Assembly: GCF_006345805.1 (NCBI RefSeq)
Contig: NC_043002.1
Span: 55,304,001 to 55,368,000 of the forward strand
Origin: Octopus sinensis
Lineage: Eukaryota
Reading direction: 5' to 3'
DNA length: 64,000 nucleotides
Position numbers and translations under genes: made by a program. The notes under the pieces are model-generated. The model had not been told where the DNA came from and made no database searches. It saw only the letters and a program-made list of their open reading frames with translations. Below, in pieces: positions 12,700 to 51,629 of this stretch (positions within the stretch are counted from its first letter, which is position 1; each line of letters begins with the position of its first letter).

Positions 12700-13950
12700 A
12701 ACATGTCATTACAAGTGTTACACAGCACAGACAAAATATATGTTGCAGAGTTCAATTTCAGCTTCAGTTCCTCCTGTGCCTCCGAGCTCACTGGGCAGCA
12801 AGTTGATGCTGCTGGTTTCTGTTGGCTGCAGTTTTCGCTGCACCCATCATACAAAACACATGATATTTGCCTCTCTCATGTCGGTTGTGAATGACCTGCG
12901 CCATGTTGTTTTCGGTCTTTCTCTCTTTTCTCCTCTGAAAGTGTTTTTGAAAGGTGTGTGGCAGATACGAAACCGAATCTTTGAATTTCCGAGTAAGAGT
13001 TACGACATACCCATAATCATTTCACGTGATCGGCCGATTAACTTACCAATCAGAATCAAACCATCACGCGATGCAGCTTTCCAGAATCTTCTAGAACCCC
13101 TCTGACAGGGATTATAAATATAGGAATTTTGGGCGATAAGACTTCAGAATATTGGAGACCTCCGCAAAGAAAACAGCTTTCTCATTTTTGCTTTCATTCT
13201 TCAACCGGAGCAGAAACGGTATAGCAACAATTGTTTTAATAACTACCTATTCAACCAAGCAGTTGACAACCACATATTTTTTTGTTTTCAAATTAACATA
13301 TTACTCCAAACGTGACAATGCAGTCATAGAGCATTAGTAACCAATTATTTTGTTTAAAGTTTGACTCACCCAGTGAGTATAAATTATTATTTGTATTCAT
13401 TTAAAGAACAGCATGGGAAATACTATGTGCAGTGAATAAAACTTCTACTAATTGTTCATGAGGTGTTGTTCATCATTTCCACGCAGCCACCAAACCAGCA
13501 CAGCCACCTTGCGATTCTATAAAATCACTTTCACGACATGTTTTAGAATATTGTGATTCCAGTAACCGGAGAACGTGATTTGTTCGTTTTTATCTTCGAA
13601 CTTGTGTTGGTTCCCTTTGAAATATCTTCATTTGTTATATGGTCTTGCCGCATAATCATTCTTAGAATGGAAGAGCGCTGTGACAATCGATAGAAAGCTA
13701 GATGTGTTCCACCAAAGGATGCTTGAGAAAAAACCAGTAGAACATAGTAATGAAATAATTTAACGGGTGCCAGGCAGGTGAATAAGAAAATCAAATAGCA
13801 ATACCAATAATCTGTATGAAGACTCTACATCCGAAACCAGTAAATCATTAACTAAAGAATTTGAATAAGATAAAATAGGTGCATCATTCACTGAAAACAA
13901 CAAAAGTAGCGAAGCAGTTCTACCCGAATGTTCTTGTGTTCTCAACATTT
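12700..13950 (-). mobile_element. Ancient RTE-like LINE 3' remnant
   Basis: Degenerate motifs in the expected order on the minus strand: RQDHITNEDI, RWLCWFG, RPKTTWRRS. Confidence 0.5.
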
Positions 13951-13971
13951 TAAACGATTTTAGCTTAAGAT

Positions 13972-14192
13972 ATAACGAGAAACATAAGACATCACAACTG
14001 AATTCATGTCCGAAAAGTATACACTAGCAACATTTATACAGAAAATAGCACTACTGGGTACCGCACACATCCTCCGTAAAACTCTTTCGATACAGTGAAA
14101 ATAAGAGAACCACAACAAGCCACAGGACATATCCAAGGCATACAGAGCTGTGCTCGGTAGTGCATGGAAAGCACGTGATAAAAATAAGGCTA

Positions 14193-14196
<4 letters not shown>
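13972..14196 (+). mobile_element. 3' tip of R4/Dong-like LINE (family A) ending in (AAT)n
   Basis: QKIALLGTAHILRKTLSIQ* plus a 3' UTR shared with the 15851-16793 copy. Confidence 0.8.
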
Positions 14197-14274
<78 letters not shown>

Positions 14275-14275
14275 T

Positions 14276-15640
14276 AAGTTGTTACTTATAGCTACAATGT
14301 GTTGAACTGGAATATGAGTGAAGTAAAGAATATAGATAGGAAAATACGCAAGCTGCTGAGTTGTAATAGGATGCACCACCCAAAGGCAGACGTAGATCGC
14401 CTTTAGCTTCCCAGAGCCCAAGGAGGTCGAGGCCTGATCCAATTTGAACTAGCTTACAAAACAACCACAATTGGACTGGCCAAATATCTCGAAATATCGA
14501 ATGACTGGATGCTAAAGCTCGTGGAAAATCACGAGAGGCGAAAGAAGCTTCATTCTATCATAAAGGAAAGCAAAAAATTTGCTATTGATCTCGTGCAGGA
14601 TACCCAAACTGAACAACCCGAGGGAAGTACGGCAACTATTGTTGCAAAGAAGGTGAAAATGATGGCAACGAAAAAAGCGCACGAACAATTGGCTGATAGG
14701 TGGGAGGAGAAACCTCTGCACGGCAAATATGTGACCCGCAGCAAACAAGCTGATGTTGACCAGAAGCAAACCCATCAGTGGCTACGGAGCTCAGGGCTAA
14801 AAGCAGAGAGCGAAGGTTTCATCCTGGCTGCTCAAGATCAAAGCCTATTAACCCGGAACTACCAGGCCAATGTGATGAAAAATGGAGCAGACCCAAAATG
14901 CCGATTCTGCAACGACATGATTGATACAGTGGACCATCTAATCTCTGGATGTAAAGTCTTAGCACCAGTGGAGTATAAATTAAGACATGACAGAGTTGGC
15001 CAATATCTACACTGGCTAATAAGTCGGCATTACAATATCAAAACTGCCGACAAGTGGTATAATCACCACCCTGAGGCTGTAACTGAAGGAGAAAAATGTA
15101 ACCATTCTGTGGGACTTTCCAGTACATACAGACCGAACCATCAAGGCCAATAAACCAGATATTGTTGTGAAAGACCAAAACAATAAAGTTTGCTTATTGA
15201 TCGACATGAGCATCCCCTGTGATCATAATATCACAGCGAAAGAGTTTGACAAGCTCAGAAAATATAAAGACCTACTCATTGAAATTGAGAAAATGTGGCA
15301 TCTCAAGGCGGTTACAATACCAGTGATCGTAGGAGCACTAGGAATGATCAAGAAGGGAACCGAAAATTATATGAGAATGATCCCTGGCTTACCATCCCTG
15401 CAAGAAGTGCAAAAGATTGTCTTAACTGGTACATCACATGTATTGAGAAGAGCATTGTCGTTGTGTGAATTGTTGCTGCTCATGTATTTTAATTTAACTT
15501 AAAAAAAAAATTTTAAAAATGAACGAACTATTGAGTTTGGTTTAATGGCCTACCAATGTATACTATGAGTTTCTTTGCCCTAGAAGTCGGGAAGACACTC
15601 GGCAAGAAATGGAAGCAAATTTGAAAGAAGAAAAAAAGAA
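14276..15640 (+). mobile_element. 5'-truncated R4/Dong-like LINE (family B) within (AAT)n
   Basis: KPLHGKY, AAQDQSLLTRNY, CRFC..DHLISGC (CCHC), RHD, NKPDIVV, LIDMS, KLRKYKDL; one frameshift near 15100. Confidence 0.92.
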
Positions 15641-18353: not shown

Positions 18354-18414
<61 letters not shown>

Positions 18415-18498
18415 TAATAATAATAACACAATACTAATAACAATAATAATAATAATAACAACAACAACAACAACAATAATAATAATAATAATAATAAT

Positions 18499-18835
18499 GT
18501 GGTATCTTAAAGTGGGAACTGTTCCTGTTATTGTGGGTGCCCTAGGTATGATAAGAAAGATATGTCAGAAACATCTAGATAATATCTCAGGAGAACCATG
18601 TCTCAGAGAAATCCAAAAGATTGTGCTGACAGTTACTGCCCACATTCTTAGAAAAATCTTATCAATTTAAATGTCTGTGTTGTATTACATGAAGATATTT
18701 CGCTACTTCCCCCACCACTTCCTCTCCCCAAGCTTTCAATCATACTGTAACATCTCTTATCCTTCACTCGCCCTAGGATGCTGAGTGTGTCTCGGCAAGT
18801 GATTGTAACAAATATGCAGATTAAAAGTAAACAAC
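18499..18835 (+). mobile_element. 3' tip of R4/Dong-like LINE (family D)
   Basis: VPVIVGALGMIRK..EIQKIVL..AHILRKILSI plus UTR. Confidence 0.8.
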
Positions 18836-43110: not shown

Positions 43111-43135
43111 TTTTTTATTATTGTTGTTGTTGTTG

Positions 43136-43204
<69 letters not shown>

Positions 43205-43810
43205 AACCTGTTGGCTACCATCCATTATTTAACAGATGAATGAATTGTAACGCTTAAGTCAATTAAAAATAAGAGCGATAAAAGACGAATCTATTTCCGG
43301 AAATTTATTTCACCTCCTCGTTGATTAAAATGAAGGAGAATTACAAAGAAACTGAACAACTTTCGTTTCTTTACGTCTATTGATTGAAAGATCTAAGAAA
43401 TTCTGATAGAAAAAAATAAAAGTTACAATTTCAAGTGAAGGAACATATTTCATAATAAACCTTTGGCACAAACCTCTATCATCTTTCCTATTTAACTTCC
43501 TAAAGTTATTTCTACGAGTTTCTTTGTAAACTAAACGGAACACTTTGATTCACTTTGATCCACTAAACAACCCCAGCTACATTGTCTCGATGTACGATTG
43601 TGAAACAAAGTCACACACACACACACATGCGCTCTCATCAACATTCGCACCCACACATCAACATTTGGCGACCTACTATATATGGCTATTCTTTGTAACT
43701 AAATCCTAGACATCAGAATTCCTGGTTTAAGGGTTGAAATTGTTCCGTGTTGAAATGCAACGAAATCCAGTGAGGTACAAATTTCTCTTTAAAACTTAAA
43801 AGCTAGCTGC

Positions 43811-43817
43811 TATAAAA
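43811..43817 (+). promoter_or_regulatory. TATA box of the secreted-protein gene
   Basis: TATAAAA about 30 nt before a pyrimidine-rich TTTCACTCATCA Inr-like stretch and about 190 nt upstream of the ATG. Confidence 0.6.
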
Positions 43818-43998
43818 AAGGAGCTGTTATGGCTTTCACTCATCACAAACACAAAAGTTTGCATTTGGTCACCATCTCGCCTTGCTAACTATCTTGAAGC
43901 TTCAAATTTACGCCGACTTTACAACAAAACAGCTATCTTTCACACTAAGTAGACATAGCCAACTTTACACTTCACTGACAAAAGCACAAATATCCACA

Positions 43999-44002
43999 AT
44001 GG
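43999..44002 (+). CDS. Coding part of exon 1 (ATG G), phase-1 donor
   Basis: ACAATGG|GTAAGA. The G joins TT of exon 2 to make GTT (Val). Confidence 0.75.
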
Positions 44003-44092
44003 GTAAGATCAGATTTTTCGCTTTCTGTACATTATTTTCTTCTCAGCAAGTAACAATGATTTTTCTTTCTGCTGTTTGTTTTTCTTTTTAGT

Positions 44093-44169
<77 letters not shown>

Positions 44170-45858
44170 ACATACACTTATACAGACACATATCGAAGTA
44201 AAAATAATCTTTGCATTATGCTTGTATCGTTCCAGTTTGCCGTTTCATCACCGTCGTATTGCTATGCAGTTATGCTTTACAAGTCCTTGGTTCACCAATT
44301 CCTTCTGAAACTAATTCTTCGTGGTCCTCAGATGCACTTTTCCATATTGTGCAAGAAACCTCTCATACTACAAAAATTGTAGTTGGAAACGTATTGCAGT
44401 ATTATGTAAGTAATAATTATATGTTAAAATAATAATAATAATTATGGAATGGCGGTTGAGGGACCAACGAAATACCTTGTGGTATTTTGATTTAATTCAT
44501 TTTCTAAGTTCAAATCTCACCAGATTTGACCTTTGTCATTAATCCTTTCTGGGCGATAAGTCAGTAAGTAGGGCTTTATCCTTCCGTGAACGATTGACCA
44601 GTCACTAGTAATATACTGGGGAACAATTTAATCGATTGTGTATGATCGATGGCAATATCGGAAATTACTATGCTGGATGATTCGATTGTTTGTCAGGAAT
44701 AGCAAAATACTGAACCAATTACCTCATCGTATTTTGTTAAGTTTTCAGGTTACGAGATCGAACGACACCAAAGTCAAAGGCATCATTTTTCATCCCTCTA
44801 CGACCATGTCCTGTCTTCTACAACTTTCTAATTTACCAATTGCTAAGACTTTTTCAAATCAATAATTATATCTTGATAAAAATTCTTATAAAAACAACTC
44901 CTAATTATTGAGAGATAAAATACATGAAACACCTCTAATCTATTTTTACCTTGTTTAGCTAATTATGATGTAATTATTATTATGCAATTAACTGAGGTTT
45001 TACCTGTTGTACGATAGATAACTTTGGAAGTATAGTTTTGCCACTAACTTGATAAAAACCTTACTTAATAACTATGATATGTCTGCCATATTTCTTCATA
45101 TCATCCATGGTATGGATGATATGAAGAAAGCTGGCAGAGACGTTAGCAAGCCGGGCAAAATGATTAGTGGTATTTCGTCTGTCTTTATGTTCTGAGTTCA
45201 AATTCCGCTGAGATCGACTTTGCCTTTCATCCTTTCGGGGTCTATAAAATAAATAGAATGTAATCGACTCGCTTCCCCCGCCCCACCCGCTCCCGAAATA
45301 GCTGGCCTTGTGCTAAAATTTGAAACCAATATAATCGTAGCAATTTTAGTGATAAATTCATTTGCAACACATTGCTATAAATTCTTAACTTTGCAAATAC
45401 CAGCGTGCTTTGAAGCGTATCTTCGGAATATATATTCACTACTATAAATATAATTTTCTACGAAAAACGCAGGGCCTGAAATTTTGCGGGATGGAGATAA
45501 TCGATTAATACAACTGGTGCTTATTTCATCGACCCCGAAAGGATGAAAGACAAAATCGATCTCAGGGGAATTTAAACTCAGAACGTAAAAACGGACGACA
45601 TACCGCTAAGCATTTCGCTCGACGTGCTAACGTTTCCGCCAGCTCGCCGTCTTCATTACGATAAATATTGACTATTTTAGAATCTTTTTTTCACTAACAG
45701 TCAACTACTTCGTCATTTATTCCCCTTCCTCTATGATTCTTTTTCATTTTATATGTGTATGTGACGTTCCTTTACTCATTGCCTTCCACCAAGCCTGATA
45801 TGTGCACTTAACTCTGCACCTGTTACGTTAATCCTGTCTGTCTGTCTATCTGTCTGTC

Positions 45859-45956
<98 letters not shown>

Positions 45957-46916
45957 TCTTTCTCCCTCTCTCTCCCTCTTCTTCTTCCATGCCATGTAAA
46001 GTGGAAATGGAGAAATCAACCAACCAACATTTATTCTGTTGCTATTATTATGTAATTAAATATTACATATTATATATTATGTATATTATATTTTCTAGTG
46101 TGACAACATGTGGTACTTTCCCGGTGTTGAATGTAAAGATTTTATCGAGCACCTAACCAATTTAACGAATAAAACTTTTCCCGAATTACACCTGAGAGAA
46201 GATTTGAATTTCACAAACTACGACGATTTCGAGGTATGTTTTTAATGAATATTTCAGTATTTTTACAACTAGCGATTGTTTCATTAGGTCGACGCCTCTA
46301 ACACTCAATATTTTCTTCATCATTGGGGTTGATTTGAAGAAGAAAAGAAGCGGTCATTTTCCCGCAACTCTATAACTCTGGTGGGTTTCATCTGGGATTG
46401 GAAAAGTCCCAATGATTCGGTGGCCTTAGAGTGGGAAACACCATAATGAAATTTTTGTTTTTTAAGTGGGTAACAAGCAAATCGAAAGACTAAGTTTTCG
46501 AAGGATCAACCAAGCTAATGATAACTTTTAACACAAAGAGGATAATCTGATTTAATTCTCTAATCCCGTCTCTTCACGGCAGAGTTAGGCCACCCATTTT
46601 AGGGTCTTGTGCTGTAGCAAAGCAAGAGTTTTGTGCGTCTGAGTATACCTCAGTGACAAGACAATGTTTATAGGAAACGGTAATAAATTGGGAGAACCGG
46701 TAATGGGCTGCAGTAAAAAACATTGCGCTATTCTGTGAATATAAATATGGATTTACATCATTTTGTCCAAGAATGGTGAGGGAGTGTCAGGGTTGCAACA
46801 TTAGCAGACTAAATGTTGGGGTAATATACTGTAATCAAATCAGTCGATTATAAACCAGGCTAAATATATATGGAGAAGTCAGCATGGTCACTAACGAGTT
46901 GTGATATAATAACCAC

Positions 46917-46968
<52 letters not shown>

Positions 46969-47711
46969 TGAATATATGTAAATTTGTGTGACTGCATACA
47001 AACATATATGTATATATTTATACACATACAAGTGTATAAGTATGTATGTGTATGTATGTGTGTGTGTTTTTATTTGTCAAACGTTGGAAAGAAAACGAAT
47101 TCTTGCTTATTTTCCGTTCCATTTACAAGAATGTATCCATTTAGATATACAAGTGTCTGTGACTTATGTATTCTTCAACGCTTCATGCCTTTTTATATAT
47201 ATATATTTTTTATATATTTTATATATCGAAACATGTCTTTATTTCACAATTTCAACTACAGCAGCAATTTCTCGTTATTTCTTCCTCAATCTAGATGGCT
47301 TTAGTAAACATGACCGCCGTAATTTCACAATACAACACCAGTATCGAAAGCCAACTAAACAGAGAACTCAGCTATCTTTGTGCTCCTGCAAAGGAACTCG
47401 GAGTTCCCTGCTATTATCCAAATGCTTGTTTTCAAGGAACTTTCAGTAATGATGCCACATTTTTCTGTCATTTGCGGAATGCCAATTCACTCTTGAAAGA
47501 TCTGAAGCTACTTTTAACGCAGATGGTAAGTATTTCAATGTTAATGGCGACTATATATTTTAACTATTTTGTATCCTTTTGTCTCTCTATTTATTTATCC
47601 GCTTATCTCTCTATAATCGGTCTATTCTATGTATCCATGTATATACATGTATGCATACATAAATACATATATATATATATATATGTATGTAAGTATGTAT
47701 GTATGTATGTA

Positions 47712-47750
<39 letters not shown>

Positions 47751-48034
47751 TCATGTTGGACCGCTGAACTTTACAGTTTTTCTCTCTCCATTTTCCCCCT
47801 TCTTCCTCTCTGTCGAAGAGCATAGGCTCGAAACGTAAAAGACTTTTCCATTTTCCCCGAGCGTTAAACTAATACACCTACTTGTTTTTCCTACACCTGT
47901 CTTCGTCCTTTGTTTTTCTATAAGGTTGAACAATATATATATTTAAATTGATGTAATGATTGCATTGTTCAATTAAATGGAGTTGCTTGAAACGATCGTA
48001 CTACATTACCTCTAGATATCGTTGTTGATTATTT

Positions 48035-48089
<55 letters not shown>

Positions 48090-48714
48090 CATACATACAT
48101 ACATACATACATACATACATACATACATACATACTATTTTCTTACTTGCCTACCTATCGATTTAACCCACCCACTCACCTACCCAGCAATTTCGAGGGAG
48201 GGTCTAAGCTGGTTATATTGACCCCAGGGCACAACTGGTACTTATTTTATCGTCCTCGAAAAAATATTAAAGATATTAACGAAGTAAACGGAAATGTTTT
48301 TGATGAAGCCATGATACGGGATTGGATTTCCCGGAACGCTCTTGCCACACACACACACACACACACATACACACATTACACGTCTTTTCATGTACTCTCT
48401 GTTTCTCCCTCTCTCTCACTCATGCACACACACACATACGCACACTTTTTTCTCTCTTTCCTTCTTCCTTCTCCCACCCCTCGCCAACCAATATATCTAA
48501 CTAAATACCCGATCTTTACATCCGGTTATACCAACTTTAACAAGTAAACCCAATTACTTTATCGTTCTTCTTCTTCTTCTTCTTCTCAAACTTTTTCTGA
48601 CGTTCGTCTCTTTTTATCTCCCGTTCATTAAACTCTATTGACCCCTTATTCTACCTCAAAACACTACAAGTGTGAATGTTCACTTCCTTCTGATCAATAC
48701 CATACCTTATGTGT

Positions 48715-48766
<52 letters not shown>

Positions 48767-49878
48767 GTACGTATATATATATATATATATATATAACGAA
48801 ACCGTTTCATTCAGACTCCTTTGTACTCAGAGTTTCAAGTGTGTGGCTAGTCTTCAGCCATTGTGGTCAGACCCCAATGGTCGAAGACTAGCCACACGTT
48901 TGAAACTCAGAGTAGCAAGGAGTCTGAATCAAACTGTTTTGCTCGATACATGTAACTCCCAATAAATCAATAAATATGTTGGGTGCCCTTCTTTCGTTTG
49001 TCCACAGACTGGTGTAAATTTGTTAAATATTTCTATACATTACACACACACGTGTGTGTATATACATGTATATATCTTTGTGTGTATGTGTGTGTGTTTA
49101 TATGCAATTATATACAATCCATAATATGTCGCCTGCATTAGATTTGAACATACAAACTAATAATCTAGTTATCTTTCAACAGTTAAATAAGATGGGATTT
49201 TATCTTGACCATTCTTTATCATTACGTTTCTCAAAGAAAGTCCGAGCTAATACCAGTTCCATTAACTTTAATCCAAGGAACGTTCTACAAACATCATCCG
49301 TTGTAAAAGATTTCTTTAATCCATTCCTAACACCTCTTGGATGGTTTCAGTTTCTTTAAGAGAATGACAAAATAGAAATTATTTCGGGATTTTGTTGCAG
49401 TGATAAGTGGGAGCAGAGTAAAACTGCTAAGAGTTTCATTGGCTTGTAATATTGAGTTCGAATCGGTAACAGGGAGACAGAAGACATTCTGCAGGACAGC
49501 TGGCTCTACATACATAGATGTAGACGGCGGCGACTCTTCATCAGTATCAATATGCCGTAATGATGATTGTTACAAAACACTTTCCTGTTAAATCGATCTT
49601 CAGAGTTGTTTCGATTGATCAAAATATTTATGGAGAAGCGATTTCAGATGACTTATTATAAACTTCAATCAAATTAATTAAATGATTCACATGTTTTTCT
49701 TTTTTTTTTACTATTTTAGGTAACAACTTACAGTTTTGAAAACACCACCGTTGACAACGATTTATTGGTCAAGTCAGATACCCCTTTGGTATGGAGCCGA
49801 TGGTTTTCAATGGTCACTCTCCATCATCTACAAAATCTACTTAATCAAGTGGATGACAAGCTTCGATTAGAATTTTAA
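43999..49878 (+). CDS. Spliced 5-exon gene for a 232-aa secreted protein; candidate long-chain four-helix (IL-6/G-CSF-like) cytokine
   Basis: Join 43999-44002, 44236-44405, 46099-46233, 47295-47525, 49720-49878 = 699 nt, open frame, all GT-AG introns. Protein: [232 protein letters not shown]. Signal-peptide-like N-terminus, 6 Cys in the mature part, 7 N-X-S/T sequons. The confidence value is for the gene model; the family call is less certain (about 0.6). Confidence 0.85.
44236..44405 (+). CDS. Exon 2: signal peptide and predicted helix A
   Basis: Acceptor TTCCAG|, donor |GTAAGT. Encodes hydrophobic [18 protein letters not shown] followed by SPIP. Confidence 0.85.
46099..46233 (+). CDS. Exon 3 (45 codons): predicted A-B loop
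   Basis: Acceptor TTTTCTAG|, donor |GTATGT, 135 nt open in phase 0. Confidence 0.85.
47295..47525 (+). CDS. Exon 4 (77 codons): predicted helix B, Cys-rich insert and helix C
   Basis: Acceptor CTTCCTCAATCTAG|, donor |GTAAGT, 231 nt open in phase 0. Matches the start of track ORF 47295..47825. Confidence 0.85.
47812..47848 (+). ncRNA. Variant hammerhead-like motif in intron 4, within a short repeat at about 47750-47935
   Basis: CTGTCGA AGAGC-ATAG-GCTC GAAAC GTA: A6 replaced by U and stem I is poor. Confidence 0.45.
48795..48943. repeat. About 150-bp hairpin (MITE-like) in intron 4
   Basis: TTCAGACTCC..CTCAGAGTTTCAAGTGTGTGGCTAGTCTTC / GAAGACTAGCCACACGTTTGAAACTCAGAG..GGAGTCTGAA. Confidence 0.8.
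49720..49878 (+). CDS. Exon 5 coding part (52 aa + TAA): predicted C-D loop and helix D
   Basis: Long poly-T tract then TTTTAG|, open in phase 0 to TAA at 49876-49878, amphipathic C-terminal helix. Confidence 0.85.
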   Translation, partial: VTTYSFENTTVDNDLLVKSDTPLVWSRWFSMVTLHHLQNLLNQVDDKLRLEF

Positions 49879-50238
49879 TCAAATATTTCAGATGTGTGAG
49901 CGCGCGCGTGTGTATGCGCATGTGTGTATTGTTTGAAAATTATGTATTTATCATTTTAAATTAATATTTATATATAACTTATAGCGAGCACCGTAAAAGA
50001 GGGAAGAAATGGCCAATCATTTCCGCGATACGGAATTAATAGTCTATACTCTGTCACTTCACCTACGCTGCTAATACCCCTGGGAAAGGTATGAACGCTA
50101 CCGTTTCCACATCAGATTTCTTCTGAAAACATATAGGGCATATGTTTGTCATTGAACGTCGAGAAAAAAGATCAATATTTATATAAACTACATTATGAAT
50201 GAAAAGATATATTTTTGTAAATCAATTTTTTAAATAAT

Positions 50239-50244
50239 AATAAA
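50239..50244 (+). terminator. Likely polyadenylation signal
   Basis: AATAAA 360 nt after the stop codon, followed by a GT-rich TTGTTTGTTTGTTT downstream element. Confidence 0.5.
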
Positions 50245-51629
50245 TTTACGTAAATCAATTCACTTGTTTGTTTGTTTCGTTATTCTTTTGGTTTTCTCAG
50301 ATTATTGGAGTCGAAATTAATTCCTTATAGAAATAAGCAGAAGAAAAGGCTCAAAGAGCCACGTAGAGGCTGAAAGCCTCTATAGATAGCTCTCGCTGAA
50401 AAGATGGGCTCAGTAAAGTGTCGCTTGAATACAGGTCTAAGTTTAATCGACCCAGGTCGGGTCACCTGGACGAGGTTTATGTTGTAAGACTCCGACTGCG
50501 TTCGCTGCCGGAATCCATCTTCACATCTTTGAATTGGACCTTAGTCTCAATTCAGGTGGCGCTTATGTGACGCTGCTGGAGACTGTGGTCAAACCATGAA
50601 TGGAGAAGCTTGTTGCTAGAAAGCTATATGTGTGGCAAAGAGTGAGAAGTGGTTAGATTCTTCAAGCTAACGCCTTACAGGGGATCCTTGCTGTAGAGAT
50701 ATAACTGTGACTTTGAGAGGTGTACACTATTTGTACTTGAGTGATTTTCTGTGGTAAAGGTGGCAACAAAACCTGTAACAATACAACCATAATTAGCAAC
50801 AGCAACATCAACGGATCCAACGAGTCTACCTCAACGCTTCTAGTACATCCTACAAGATATACTAACCAAAGATCCCTCGAAACACACGTTTCTGTCTTTA
50901 ATGTAAAAACACATTGTTATAGAAATATAAAAAAACAGCAGAAGAATACATAGTCACTCGATTCTATCTGTCGCCAAAGTATGCTTAATGCCACATCTCT
51001 CATGGACATAGCATCAGAAAGTTTCTATCCGGCTAACTTACAACAGGAATGGTGCACCAAGGACTTAGACATATTTGGTGTCTTGAATTTTGAGAAAATC
51101 TAATATGTTTAATCATCTTGAGAAAAAACATTCAGGTGGTGCTATTAAGTTAGACATGGCCTGGACCAATCTTTGGTCGAAACATATCTAAGTTTATCTA
51201 ATTAAGTTATAAACAAATATAAACAAATATAATTAACAAAGCAACGCATGGACTGGTTTCCTTTATCTTTGCGACTATTTTCTTTTGTTTTATCAGTTTT
51301 CATGAGAAATTTAATATTTTAATTCTATTTTCATACGAAGAGCGTCAGTAATTTTCTTTTCTCGATGTTCAGTCTCTCCTGGAATGTTTGAGGACCACTT
51401 GAAGAGGCAGTTATATCTACTCAAACAGTTAAGATTGTAATTTGTACCATTAGCTTGCCTGTGAACACTGCGTCCTTAAAAAATCACATGCTTTTTGACT
51501 TTATATTCCTAGCATCGCCCATTCACCCTTTCATTTTTATGGTTCTTTGAATTTTCACTTTTCTGTTTTCGTTTTTCCTGTATACTATACATGTGCTTTT
51601 AGCTATTATTGCTATCATTCTTTACTTCA

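Follow-up and report, generated by a model that had tools for sequence, protein, structure and literature searches.

Does a five-exon gene in a 64-kb stretch of octopus DNA (contig NC_043002.1, positions 55,304,001 to 55,368,000; hereafter the window, meaning all 64,000 nt analysed) encode a helical cytokine, a kind of protein that, to our knowledge, is essentially unknown among invertebrates outside insects (Upd)? A 2026 survey recovered IL-6-family ligands by sequence only in vertebrates; in molluscs it found an IL6R/Domeless-like receptor along with JAK and STAT, and recorded no known ligand for them (PMC13203501). Here, the predicted product of the window gene is a secreted glycoprotein that is modelled as a long-chain four-helix bundle with G-CSF as its closest structural match, and we suggest, at a probability of roughly 0.55, that it is a secreted long-chain helical ligand acting via a class I (Domeless/gp130-like) receptor and JAK/STAT. 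A preliminary description of the locus, made from the DNA letters alone, had proposed an IL-6/G-CSF-type cytokine, and as a candidate this proposal is supported by the predicted fold, the structural neighbours and the secretory features of the protein.

Gene model and predicted product

The model rebuilt from the sequence has five exons on the + strand, which splice to a 699-nt open reading frame (ORF; 232 codons plus TAA) with coding lengths of 4, 170, 135, 231 and 159 nt. All four introns run from GT to AG, with GTAAG or GTATG donors and pyrimidine-rich acceptors, and their phases are 1-0-0-0. The preliminary description had given the same GT-AG gene and 232-aa frame together with a TATA box and an AATAAA signal, and each of these was found in place. 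The parts of the gene are listed below, with A to D denoting the four long predicted helices, and AB, BC and CD the loops between them.

43811-43817, + strand: TATA box (TATAAAA), conserved in Octopus sinensis and Octopus bimaculoides
43999-44002, + strand: coding part of exon 1, ATGG (the start codon and 1 nt more); the intron after it is in phase 1
44003-44235, + strand: intron 1, phase 1, made up largely of a (CA)n microsatellite
44236-44405, + strand: exon 2, 170 nt, with the remaining signal peptide (predicted cleavage at about G20/S21), the N-terminal tail and helix A; same borders in the O. sinensis orthologue
44406-46098, + strand: intron 2, phase 0, with an inverted pair of repeats resembling short interspersed nuclear elements (SINEs)
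46099-46233, + strand: exon 3, 135 nt, with C59-x10-C70, the AB-loop mini-helix, the (F/L)PxL motif and 3 sequons
46234-47294, + strand: intron 3, phase 0
47295-47525, + strand: exon 4, 231 nt, with helix B, the four-Cys BC-loop motif and helix C; 231 nt also in the paralogue P0004 and in Sepia
47526-49719, + strand: intron 4, phase 0, microsatellite-rich
49720-49878, + strand: coding part of exon 5, 159 nt including TAA, with the CD loop and helix D, which has a conserved RWF(S/T)M-TL start
49879-50265, + strand: putative 3' untranslated region (3'UTR), with 4 ATTTA pentamers and AATAAA at 50239-50244

O. sinensis has the same letters at the exon 1 junction (CCACAATGG followed by GTAAGATC), and its RefSeq model begins at the same ATG. 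Upstream of 43999 there is probably a 5'UTR reaching to ~43840, the transcription start being placed from the TATA position only. Downstream of the stop codon, the AATAAA at 50239-50244 is the sole AATAAA or ATTAAA within ~1.1 kb (to 51000).

The encoded protein begins with M-V-C-R, continues with a hydrophobic core that ends in VLG, followed by SPIPS (a cleavage position that fits the -3/-1 rule), and terminates in KLRLEF. A G or V before the predicted cleavage position and xPI after it are conserved in paralogues. The chain carries seven N-x-S/T sequons (N28, N79, N82, N95, N108, N117 and N188) and eight Cys, two of them in the signal peptide and six in the mature chain (C59, C70, C132, C142, C148 and C161). 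The signal peptide, the number of sequons and the six mature Cys are as first described. A predicted signal peptide, sequons and conserved Cys, the secretory features of long-chain class I cytokines, are thus all found, and the product is predicted from its sequence to be a secreted, heavily N-glycosylated protein of ~212 mature residues.

Predicted fold and structural neighbours

AlphaFold2 models were built for the window protein and for a paralogue, O. bimaculoides LOC106873702 (26% identical), from a common 19-sequence family alignment (effective number of sequences, Neff, ~3). The window protein was modelled with a predicted local distance difference test (pLDDT) score of 81.1 and a predicted template modelling (pTM) score of 0.77, as four helices at residues 33-61, 99-138, 155-180 and 203-230 (29, 40, 26 and 28 residues) connected by AB, BC and CD loops of 37, 16 and 22 residues, with short additional helices in the AB and BC connections. 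The paralogue adopted the same layout (pLDDT 75.0, pTM 0.74). Four helices of ~25 residues or more, with a short BC loop between long AB and CD loops, are therefore present in the AlphaFold2 models, and because a long-short-long loop pattern is what an up-up-down-down bundle needs, the models are compatible with that arrangement. The amphipathic stretches noted in the preliminary description (about residues 34-58, 101-131, 158-181 and 204-232) almost coincide with the modelled helices, and the long-chain four-helix bundle that it expected agrees with the prediction for both proteins.

When the window protein was compared with the PDB using Foldseek, ranks 1-37 were all long-chain class I cytokines or hormones. 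G-CSF occupied ranks 1-5 (E 0.04, probability 1.00, template modelling (TM) score per target 0.74-0.77, ~205 aligned columns) and was followed by LIF, prolactin, IL-27 p28, GH, IL-6, IL-11, CLCF1, CNTF and IL-23 p19, consistent with the earlier expectation that IL-6, G-CSF and LIF would head the matches. For the paralogue, G-CSF took ranks 1-9, then came the same set, and most of the top 28 were long-chain cytokines or hormones. Probabilities of the cytokine matches were 0.9-1.0, with TM scores of 0.70-0.77 for the best. A search of a viral structure library served as a specificity control for the cytokine match: the sole confident match was K2 (vIL-6) of human herpesvirus 8 (HHV-8; probability 0.96), while all others were at or below 0.60 and most were below 0.25. 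The closest structures are thus members of the long-chain class I superfamily, and these models support the reading of the window protein as a long-chain four-helix bundle of class I helical-cytokine type.

Members of the IL-6/G-CSF/MGF family (PF00489) resemble the predicted octopus protein in being secreted glycoproteins of ~180-210 mature residues with four long helices and extended AB and CD loops. Of the family, G-CSF matches best in structure, closely followed by IL-6, IL-11 and IL-27p28. Further common features are a disulfide (predicted in the octopus protein) right after helix A, immediately downstream of intron 2, and ATTTA motifs in the 3'UTR. The octopus protein differs in its longer helix B (~40 residues) and in its six Cys, two probable disulfides being placed in the B-C connection, whereas the second disulfide of IL-6 and G-CSF joins the AB loop to helix B.

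Class II cytokines (the interferons together with the IL-10 family) are likewise helical, secreted proteins of ~200 aa with five exons and phase-0 introns, and in IFNL2 and IFNL3 an additional, very small first coding exon precedes a phase-1 intron (PMC2654155; bioRxiv 10.64898/2026.05.30.728932). The class II fold differs, however, in having six or seven helices, and class II cytokines were essentially absent from the confident matches (grass carp IFNa, probability 0.07; poxvirus IL-10 homologue, 0.18).

Evidence for an intact gene of an expressed type

Synteny of the window with the O. sinensis and O. bimaculoides loci extends beyond 15 kb, the DNA being 85-90% identical, and the reading frame is open at all three loci. 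The O. sinensis RefSeq gene LOC115212847 (uncharacterized) encodes 228 aa that are 63% identical to the window protein and collinear with it from MVCRFI to the C-terminus, and its model shares the ATGG first coding exon and agrees at each of the three remaining junctions. LOC128248029 of O. bimaculoides (171 aa) is 91% identical to the window protein. More broadly, orthologous and paralogous cephalopod proteins match the window blocks exactly at the exon borders. Such agreement goes far beyond coincidence. The preliminary description had called the gene hidden; this holds for the raw sequence but not for public annotation, in which orthologues are already predicted and, as it had foreseen, carry the name "uncharacterized protein".

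The ratio of nonsynonymous to synonymous substitution rates (dN/dS) was 0.37 against O. bimaculoides and 0.75 overall against O. sinensis, the latter divided unevenly among exons (exon 4, 0.34; exon 3, 1.36; exon 5, 1.14). Given this per-exon pattern, we regard the gene as a fast-evolving coding gene with a constrained core; exon 4 is also its best-conserved part. The fast regions (the AB-loop exon 3, and exon 5 with the CD loop and helix D) correspond to receptor sites I and III of vertebrate IL-6-type cytokines.

A pseudogene was ruled out by the open frame at three loci, the purifying selection on exon 4 and the full-length O. sinensis RefSeq model. A genuinely shorter O. bimaculoides protein was also ruled out: the locus retains the exon 3 acceptor and the CDN codons, and exons 1-2 lie under a run of N (7883-8296 of L002, the CM046606.1 locus). 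Because this run covers exons 1-2, LOC128248029 is a 171-aa model that starts from an internal Met of exon 3, and the true protein is probably full length.

Direct transcript evidence exists for the family, and comes from a member in the cuttlefish Sepia pharaonis rather than from the window gene. An RNA-derived contig (SRR6517992_39294; Logan, run SRR6517992) matches the S. pharaonis genomic locus at 99-100% in three blocks, with two GT-AG introns removed at positions homologous to window introns 3 and 4. The spliced transcripts called for in the preliminary description are therefore available for these two introns, in the cuttlefish gene. Taking the sequence comparisons together, the window gene is judged to be intact and of an expressed type.

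The S. pharaonis contig also has an unusual 5' end. Its first 121 nt (L004 1-121) are joined to the exon beginning with the first Cys codon, have stops in all frames, with TGA directly before the junction, and do not occur in 10 kb of genomic flank. This transcript is without signal peptide and helix A, and its 5' end could mean an alternative 5' exon, an isoform that is unproductive, or a chimeric assembly.

A family in coleoid cephalopods

An exhaustive profile search (HMMER) of 1.84 billion representative proteins recovered 18 clusters, and every named member is a coleoid cephalopod protein (O. bimaculoides, O. sinensis, Octopus vulgaris, Argonauta hians and S. pharaonis), annotated without exception as uncharacterized or hypothetical. 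A word-indexed search with the family alignment gave fewer members than this exhaustive search. Each octopus genome has at least four family genes, which are dispersed and not in tandem; a tandem cluster was ruled out, since the 64-kb window holds a single copy and, in O. sinensis, the paralogue LOC118763924 is found on the same chromosome but ~51 Mb distant.

Six Cys are conserved across the family alignment in the pattern C-x10-C ... C-x9-C-x5-C-x12-C, as are an (F/L)PxL motif in the AB loop and the RWF(S/T)M-TL start of helix D, and a sequon in helix B is kept in most members. The most conserved block, LCAPAxxxGVxCxYPxACxxxTxxxDAxFYCxLR, is encoded by exon 4 and lies in the BC loop. In one O. 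vulgaris member (P0003; CAI9724409.1, 335 aa) the exon 3-4 part is present twice, and this entry looks as though two adjacent or duplicated copies of the LOC118763924 type had been fused into one model.

As far as we found, this is a rapidly evolving family that is already in public annotation as uncharacterized and has apparently not been recognised as cytokine-like. The literature searched contained no mention of six family locus identifiers and no paper linking octopus and Domeless, and among publications on invertebrate and mollusc helical cytokines there was no report of this family or of any cephalopod helical cytokine.

Insect Upd proteins are larger and matrix-associated, and their function has been shown genetically, while the octopus family is compact, G-CSF-sized and known here from sequence and predicted fold. 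Like the predicted octopus proteins, Drosophila Upd1-3 (ligands of Domeless, a gp130-like receptor of the JAK/STAT pathway) are secreted, glycosylated, regarded as helical-cytokine-like and unrecognisable by sequence from vertebrate cytokines (PMC13203501). Arthropod relatives of the family were not detectable by HMMER in the 1.84 billion representatives, a search that included no Upd-specific comparison.

Gene structure compared with vertebrate cytokines

The exon design of the window gene recurs within the family. In the paralogue P0004, a first coding exon of 10 nt is followed by introns in phases 1-0-0-0 and by exons of 135, 231 and 159 nt, and in Sepia the corresponding exons measure 132 and 231 nt. 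Exon 3 opens with the first Cys codon of the C-x10-C pair in all three genes (Cys59 in the window protein). As it is shared by P0004 and the cuttlefish gene, this exon design is taken to be ancestral to the family. Relative to the predicted protein, intron 1 interrupts the signal peptide, introns 2 and 3 lie where helix A ends and helix B begins, respectively, and intron 4 lies where helix C ends.

Human IL-6 has coding exons of 19, 191, 114, 147 and 168 nt (sum 639) in phases 1-0-0-0, a sum that agrees with the verified 212-aa precursor, and its introns occupy matching positions with respect to the helices; intron 2, for instance, comes shortly before the first Cys. The CSF3, GH1 and EPO genes have the same five-exon, 1-0-0-0 design with a tiny first coding exon. 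Five coding exons, phases 1-0-0-0 and a tiny first exon were measured directly on the octopus side; the comparison with the vertebrate phases is a lead and not a test. By a rough estimate, a random five-exon gene for a secreted protein would have phases 1-0-0-0 ~4-5% of the time. As a lead, then, the octopus gene design resembles that of IL-6/G-CSF-type genes, and this second resemblance is independent of the fold. Five exons have also been reported for G-CSF genes (PMC6389648).

Points that weigh against a cytokine assignment

Several observations weigh against the cytokine reading, and the first group concerns sequence. A Pfam scan of the window protein gave no family up to E 10, and a scan of all 19 family members gave no cytokine family. 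Searches of PDB sequences with phmmer and with a profile (hmmsearch) gave only noise (GGA3, natrin and a prenyltransferase; E >0.3). When the family profile was aligned with hhalign to human G-CSF and IL-6 (queries verified as 100% identical to the PDB chains), the probabilities were 0.2% and 0.1%, respectively. The IL-6/G-CSF signature C-x(9)-C-x(6)-G-L-x(2)-[FY]-x(3)-L at the junction of AB loop and helix B (PMC5716431) is absent from the window protein, where helix B begins without a Cys pair; the only comparable pair, C59-x10-C70, is followed by KDFIEHLT, without G-L. Because these sequence-level tests fail, the family should not be filed under Pfam IL6 (PF00489), and is to be placed at the level of fold or superfamily only. 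The same Pfam and PDB sequence searches returned no clear match to an unrelated family; such a match is among the findings that, according to the preliminary description, would have refuted its proposal. In the weak hhalign alignment to IL-6, octopus intron 3 falls one residue from IL-6 intron 3; this coincidence was discarded as evidence (P=0.5).

The second group concerns the models. The five models of the first run ranged in pLDDT from 59 to 81, and the alignment of 19 sequences behind both modelled proteins is shallow. Foldseek E-values were 0.04-1, so that the best was 0.04 and none was at or below 0.001. Helix directions were inferred from full-length sequential alignments to cytokine structures, and the disulfide pairing is itself a prediction. 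Finally, the disulfide pattern differs from that of IL-6 and G-CSF, and the profile search found the family restricted to coleoid cephalopods.

Interpretation and alternative explanations

The family was seen only in cephalopods, and a lineage-specific invention with a convergent fold is therefore possible. Under this explanation the family would comprise cephalopod-specific secreted helical proteins with a role outside class I receptor signalling (they might serve, for instance, as pheromones or contact signals, as components of saliva or venom, as carriers or as antimicrobial factors), and the similarity in fold to cytokines would have arisen by convergence. It accords with the exclusively coleoid membership among 1.84 billion representatives, with the missing sequence link to cytokines and with the family's own three-disulfide pattern; fast evolution relative to O. 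sinensis, with a dN/dS of 1 or more for exons 3 and 5, is typical also of reproductive, venom and lineage-specific secreted proteins, although fast evolution is equally the rule for cytokines. However, an up-up-down-down long-chain bundle is rare outside helical cytokines and hormones, the structural neighbours of two divergent members belong almost exclusively to these groups, and a five-exon 1-0-0-0 structure with matching intron places is not something that convergence of fold predicts. We consider this explanation unlikely, if a serious one.

Less probable again, in our estimation, is a hormone-like or neurotrophic class I ligand (GH/PRL-, leptin-, EPO- or CNTF-like), which would still signal by JAK/STAT and would act in growth, metabolism, reproduction or the nervous system. 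With regard to fold alone, GH/PRL-like hormone roles are equally compatible with the models. The confident structural matches include prolactin, GH, placental lactogen, CNTF and CLCF1, the GH and EPO genes have the same five-exon 1-0-0-0 design, to which the 10-nt first coding exon of P0004 may be added, and nothing in the data ties the gene to immunity. GH, prolactin, placental lactogen and EPO nonetheless score below G-CSF (TM per target 0.55-0.65) and differ from the octopus protein in their disulfide positions, with no sequence similarity. G-CSF is the best match for both models, IL-6-family members outnumber hormones among the matches, and the ATTTA motifs of the 3'UTR, although weak evidence, are more typical of inducible cytokine mRNAs.

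It is very improbable that the bundle is a prediction artefact, in which AlphaFold2 packed a helical protein into the nearest known fold: the thin common alignment (19 sequences, Neff ~3), the pLDDT spread of 59-81 and the non-significant Foldseek E-values would allow it, but pTM scores of 0.77 and 0.74 were reached for two members only 26% identical, the helix lengths and long-short-long loops follow from the sequence and were predicted independently from amphipathicity, and conserved Cys pairs are placed where neighbouring elements could be stapled.

For the preferred reading, a secreted long-chain helical ligand of a class I receptor, the following mechanism may be envisaged. The signal peptide would be cleaved and the mature protein released, with its bundle presumably stapled by three family-specific disulfides (C-x10-C, linking the end of helix A and the AB loop, plus two in the B-C connection). 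Faces of the helix bundle would then bind the cytokine-binding module, consisting of two fibronectin type III (FnIII) domains, of a Domeless/gp130-type class I receptor, and binding would lead to receptor dimerisation and to activation of JAK and then STAT. Homology with vertebrate cytokines, receptor binding, JAK/STAT signalling and an immune role are what we infer here, as distinct from the gene model and gene structure, the conservation, the secretory features and the predicted fold with its closest structures, which are results of the analysis. A stronger version of this reading holds that the octopus protein is a true homologue of IL-6/G-CSF-type cytokines which has kept an ancestral bilaterian five-exon 1-0-0-0 design, and that the family is the natural ligand set of the molluscan Domeless/gp130-like receptor; we put this forward tentatively, as possible but somewhat doubtful.

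In either version, the family supplies concrete candidates for a ligand, with at least four genes per octopus, a size and predicted fold like those of G-CSF and a cytokine-like gene structure. If the homology is true, long-chain class I helical cytokines predate the protostome-deuterostome split and were present in the bilaterian ancestor. The missing ligand of the lophotrochozoan JAK/STAT pathway would then be supplied, and research on cephalopod immunology, haematopoiesis and regeneration would gain a handle on a signalling axis that has been without a ligand. If the fold is instead convergent, the family would still be a lineage-specific group of secreted proteins that evolved a cytokine-type bundle.

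Flanking signals and other features of the window

One further element near the gene stands out by its conservation:

43710-43764, + strand: promoter block of 55 bp, candidate regulatory element, ~50-100 bp upstream of the TATA box

In a three-way alignment this block is invariant across the window, O. sinensis and O. bimaculoides, while identity in the syntenic DNA around it is ~85-90%. Inspection by eye shows in the block a GAATTCC core (a kappaB-like half site) and TTGAAATGCAAC (C/EBP-like), both of which are putative motif calls.

At the other end of the gene, ATTTA pentamers are enriched after the stop codon at all three loci, with 4 in the window (49879-50265), 7 at the L001 locus (18409-18808) and 6 at the L002 locus (13907-14306), against an expectation of ~1 from local density; the counts for the orthologues were taken over 400 nt past the stop. 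This enrichment resembles the AU-rich instability elements of cytokine mRNAs, and AT-rich UTRs alone could explain it.

Elsewhere in the 64-kb window, the remaining long ORFs gave no convincing Pfam match and an Rfam scan of the window gave none. A 214-aa ORF at 14509-15153 (+ strand) has a weak zf-RVT match (E 0.001, below the Pfam cut-off) and is probably part of a decayed retroelement of the long interspersed nuclear element (LINE) type. Within the gene, the inverted repeats of intron 2 (45129-45252 and 45521-45644) are 124 nt each, 85% complementary and 268 nt apart; they resemble a SINE-like element at ~44440-44560, and similar copies occur at the O. sinensis and O. bimaculoides loci. Microsatellites are dense in and around the gene (43120-43200, 44090-44170, 45830-45960, 46920-46970, 47640-47750, 48040-48130, 48340-48375 and 48710-48800) and are of the types (ATT)n, (CA)n, (CTGT)n/(CT)n/(TA)n, (TGTA)n, (TA)n and (CATA)n, with the coding exons forming islands of unique sequence among them.

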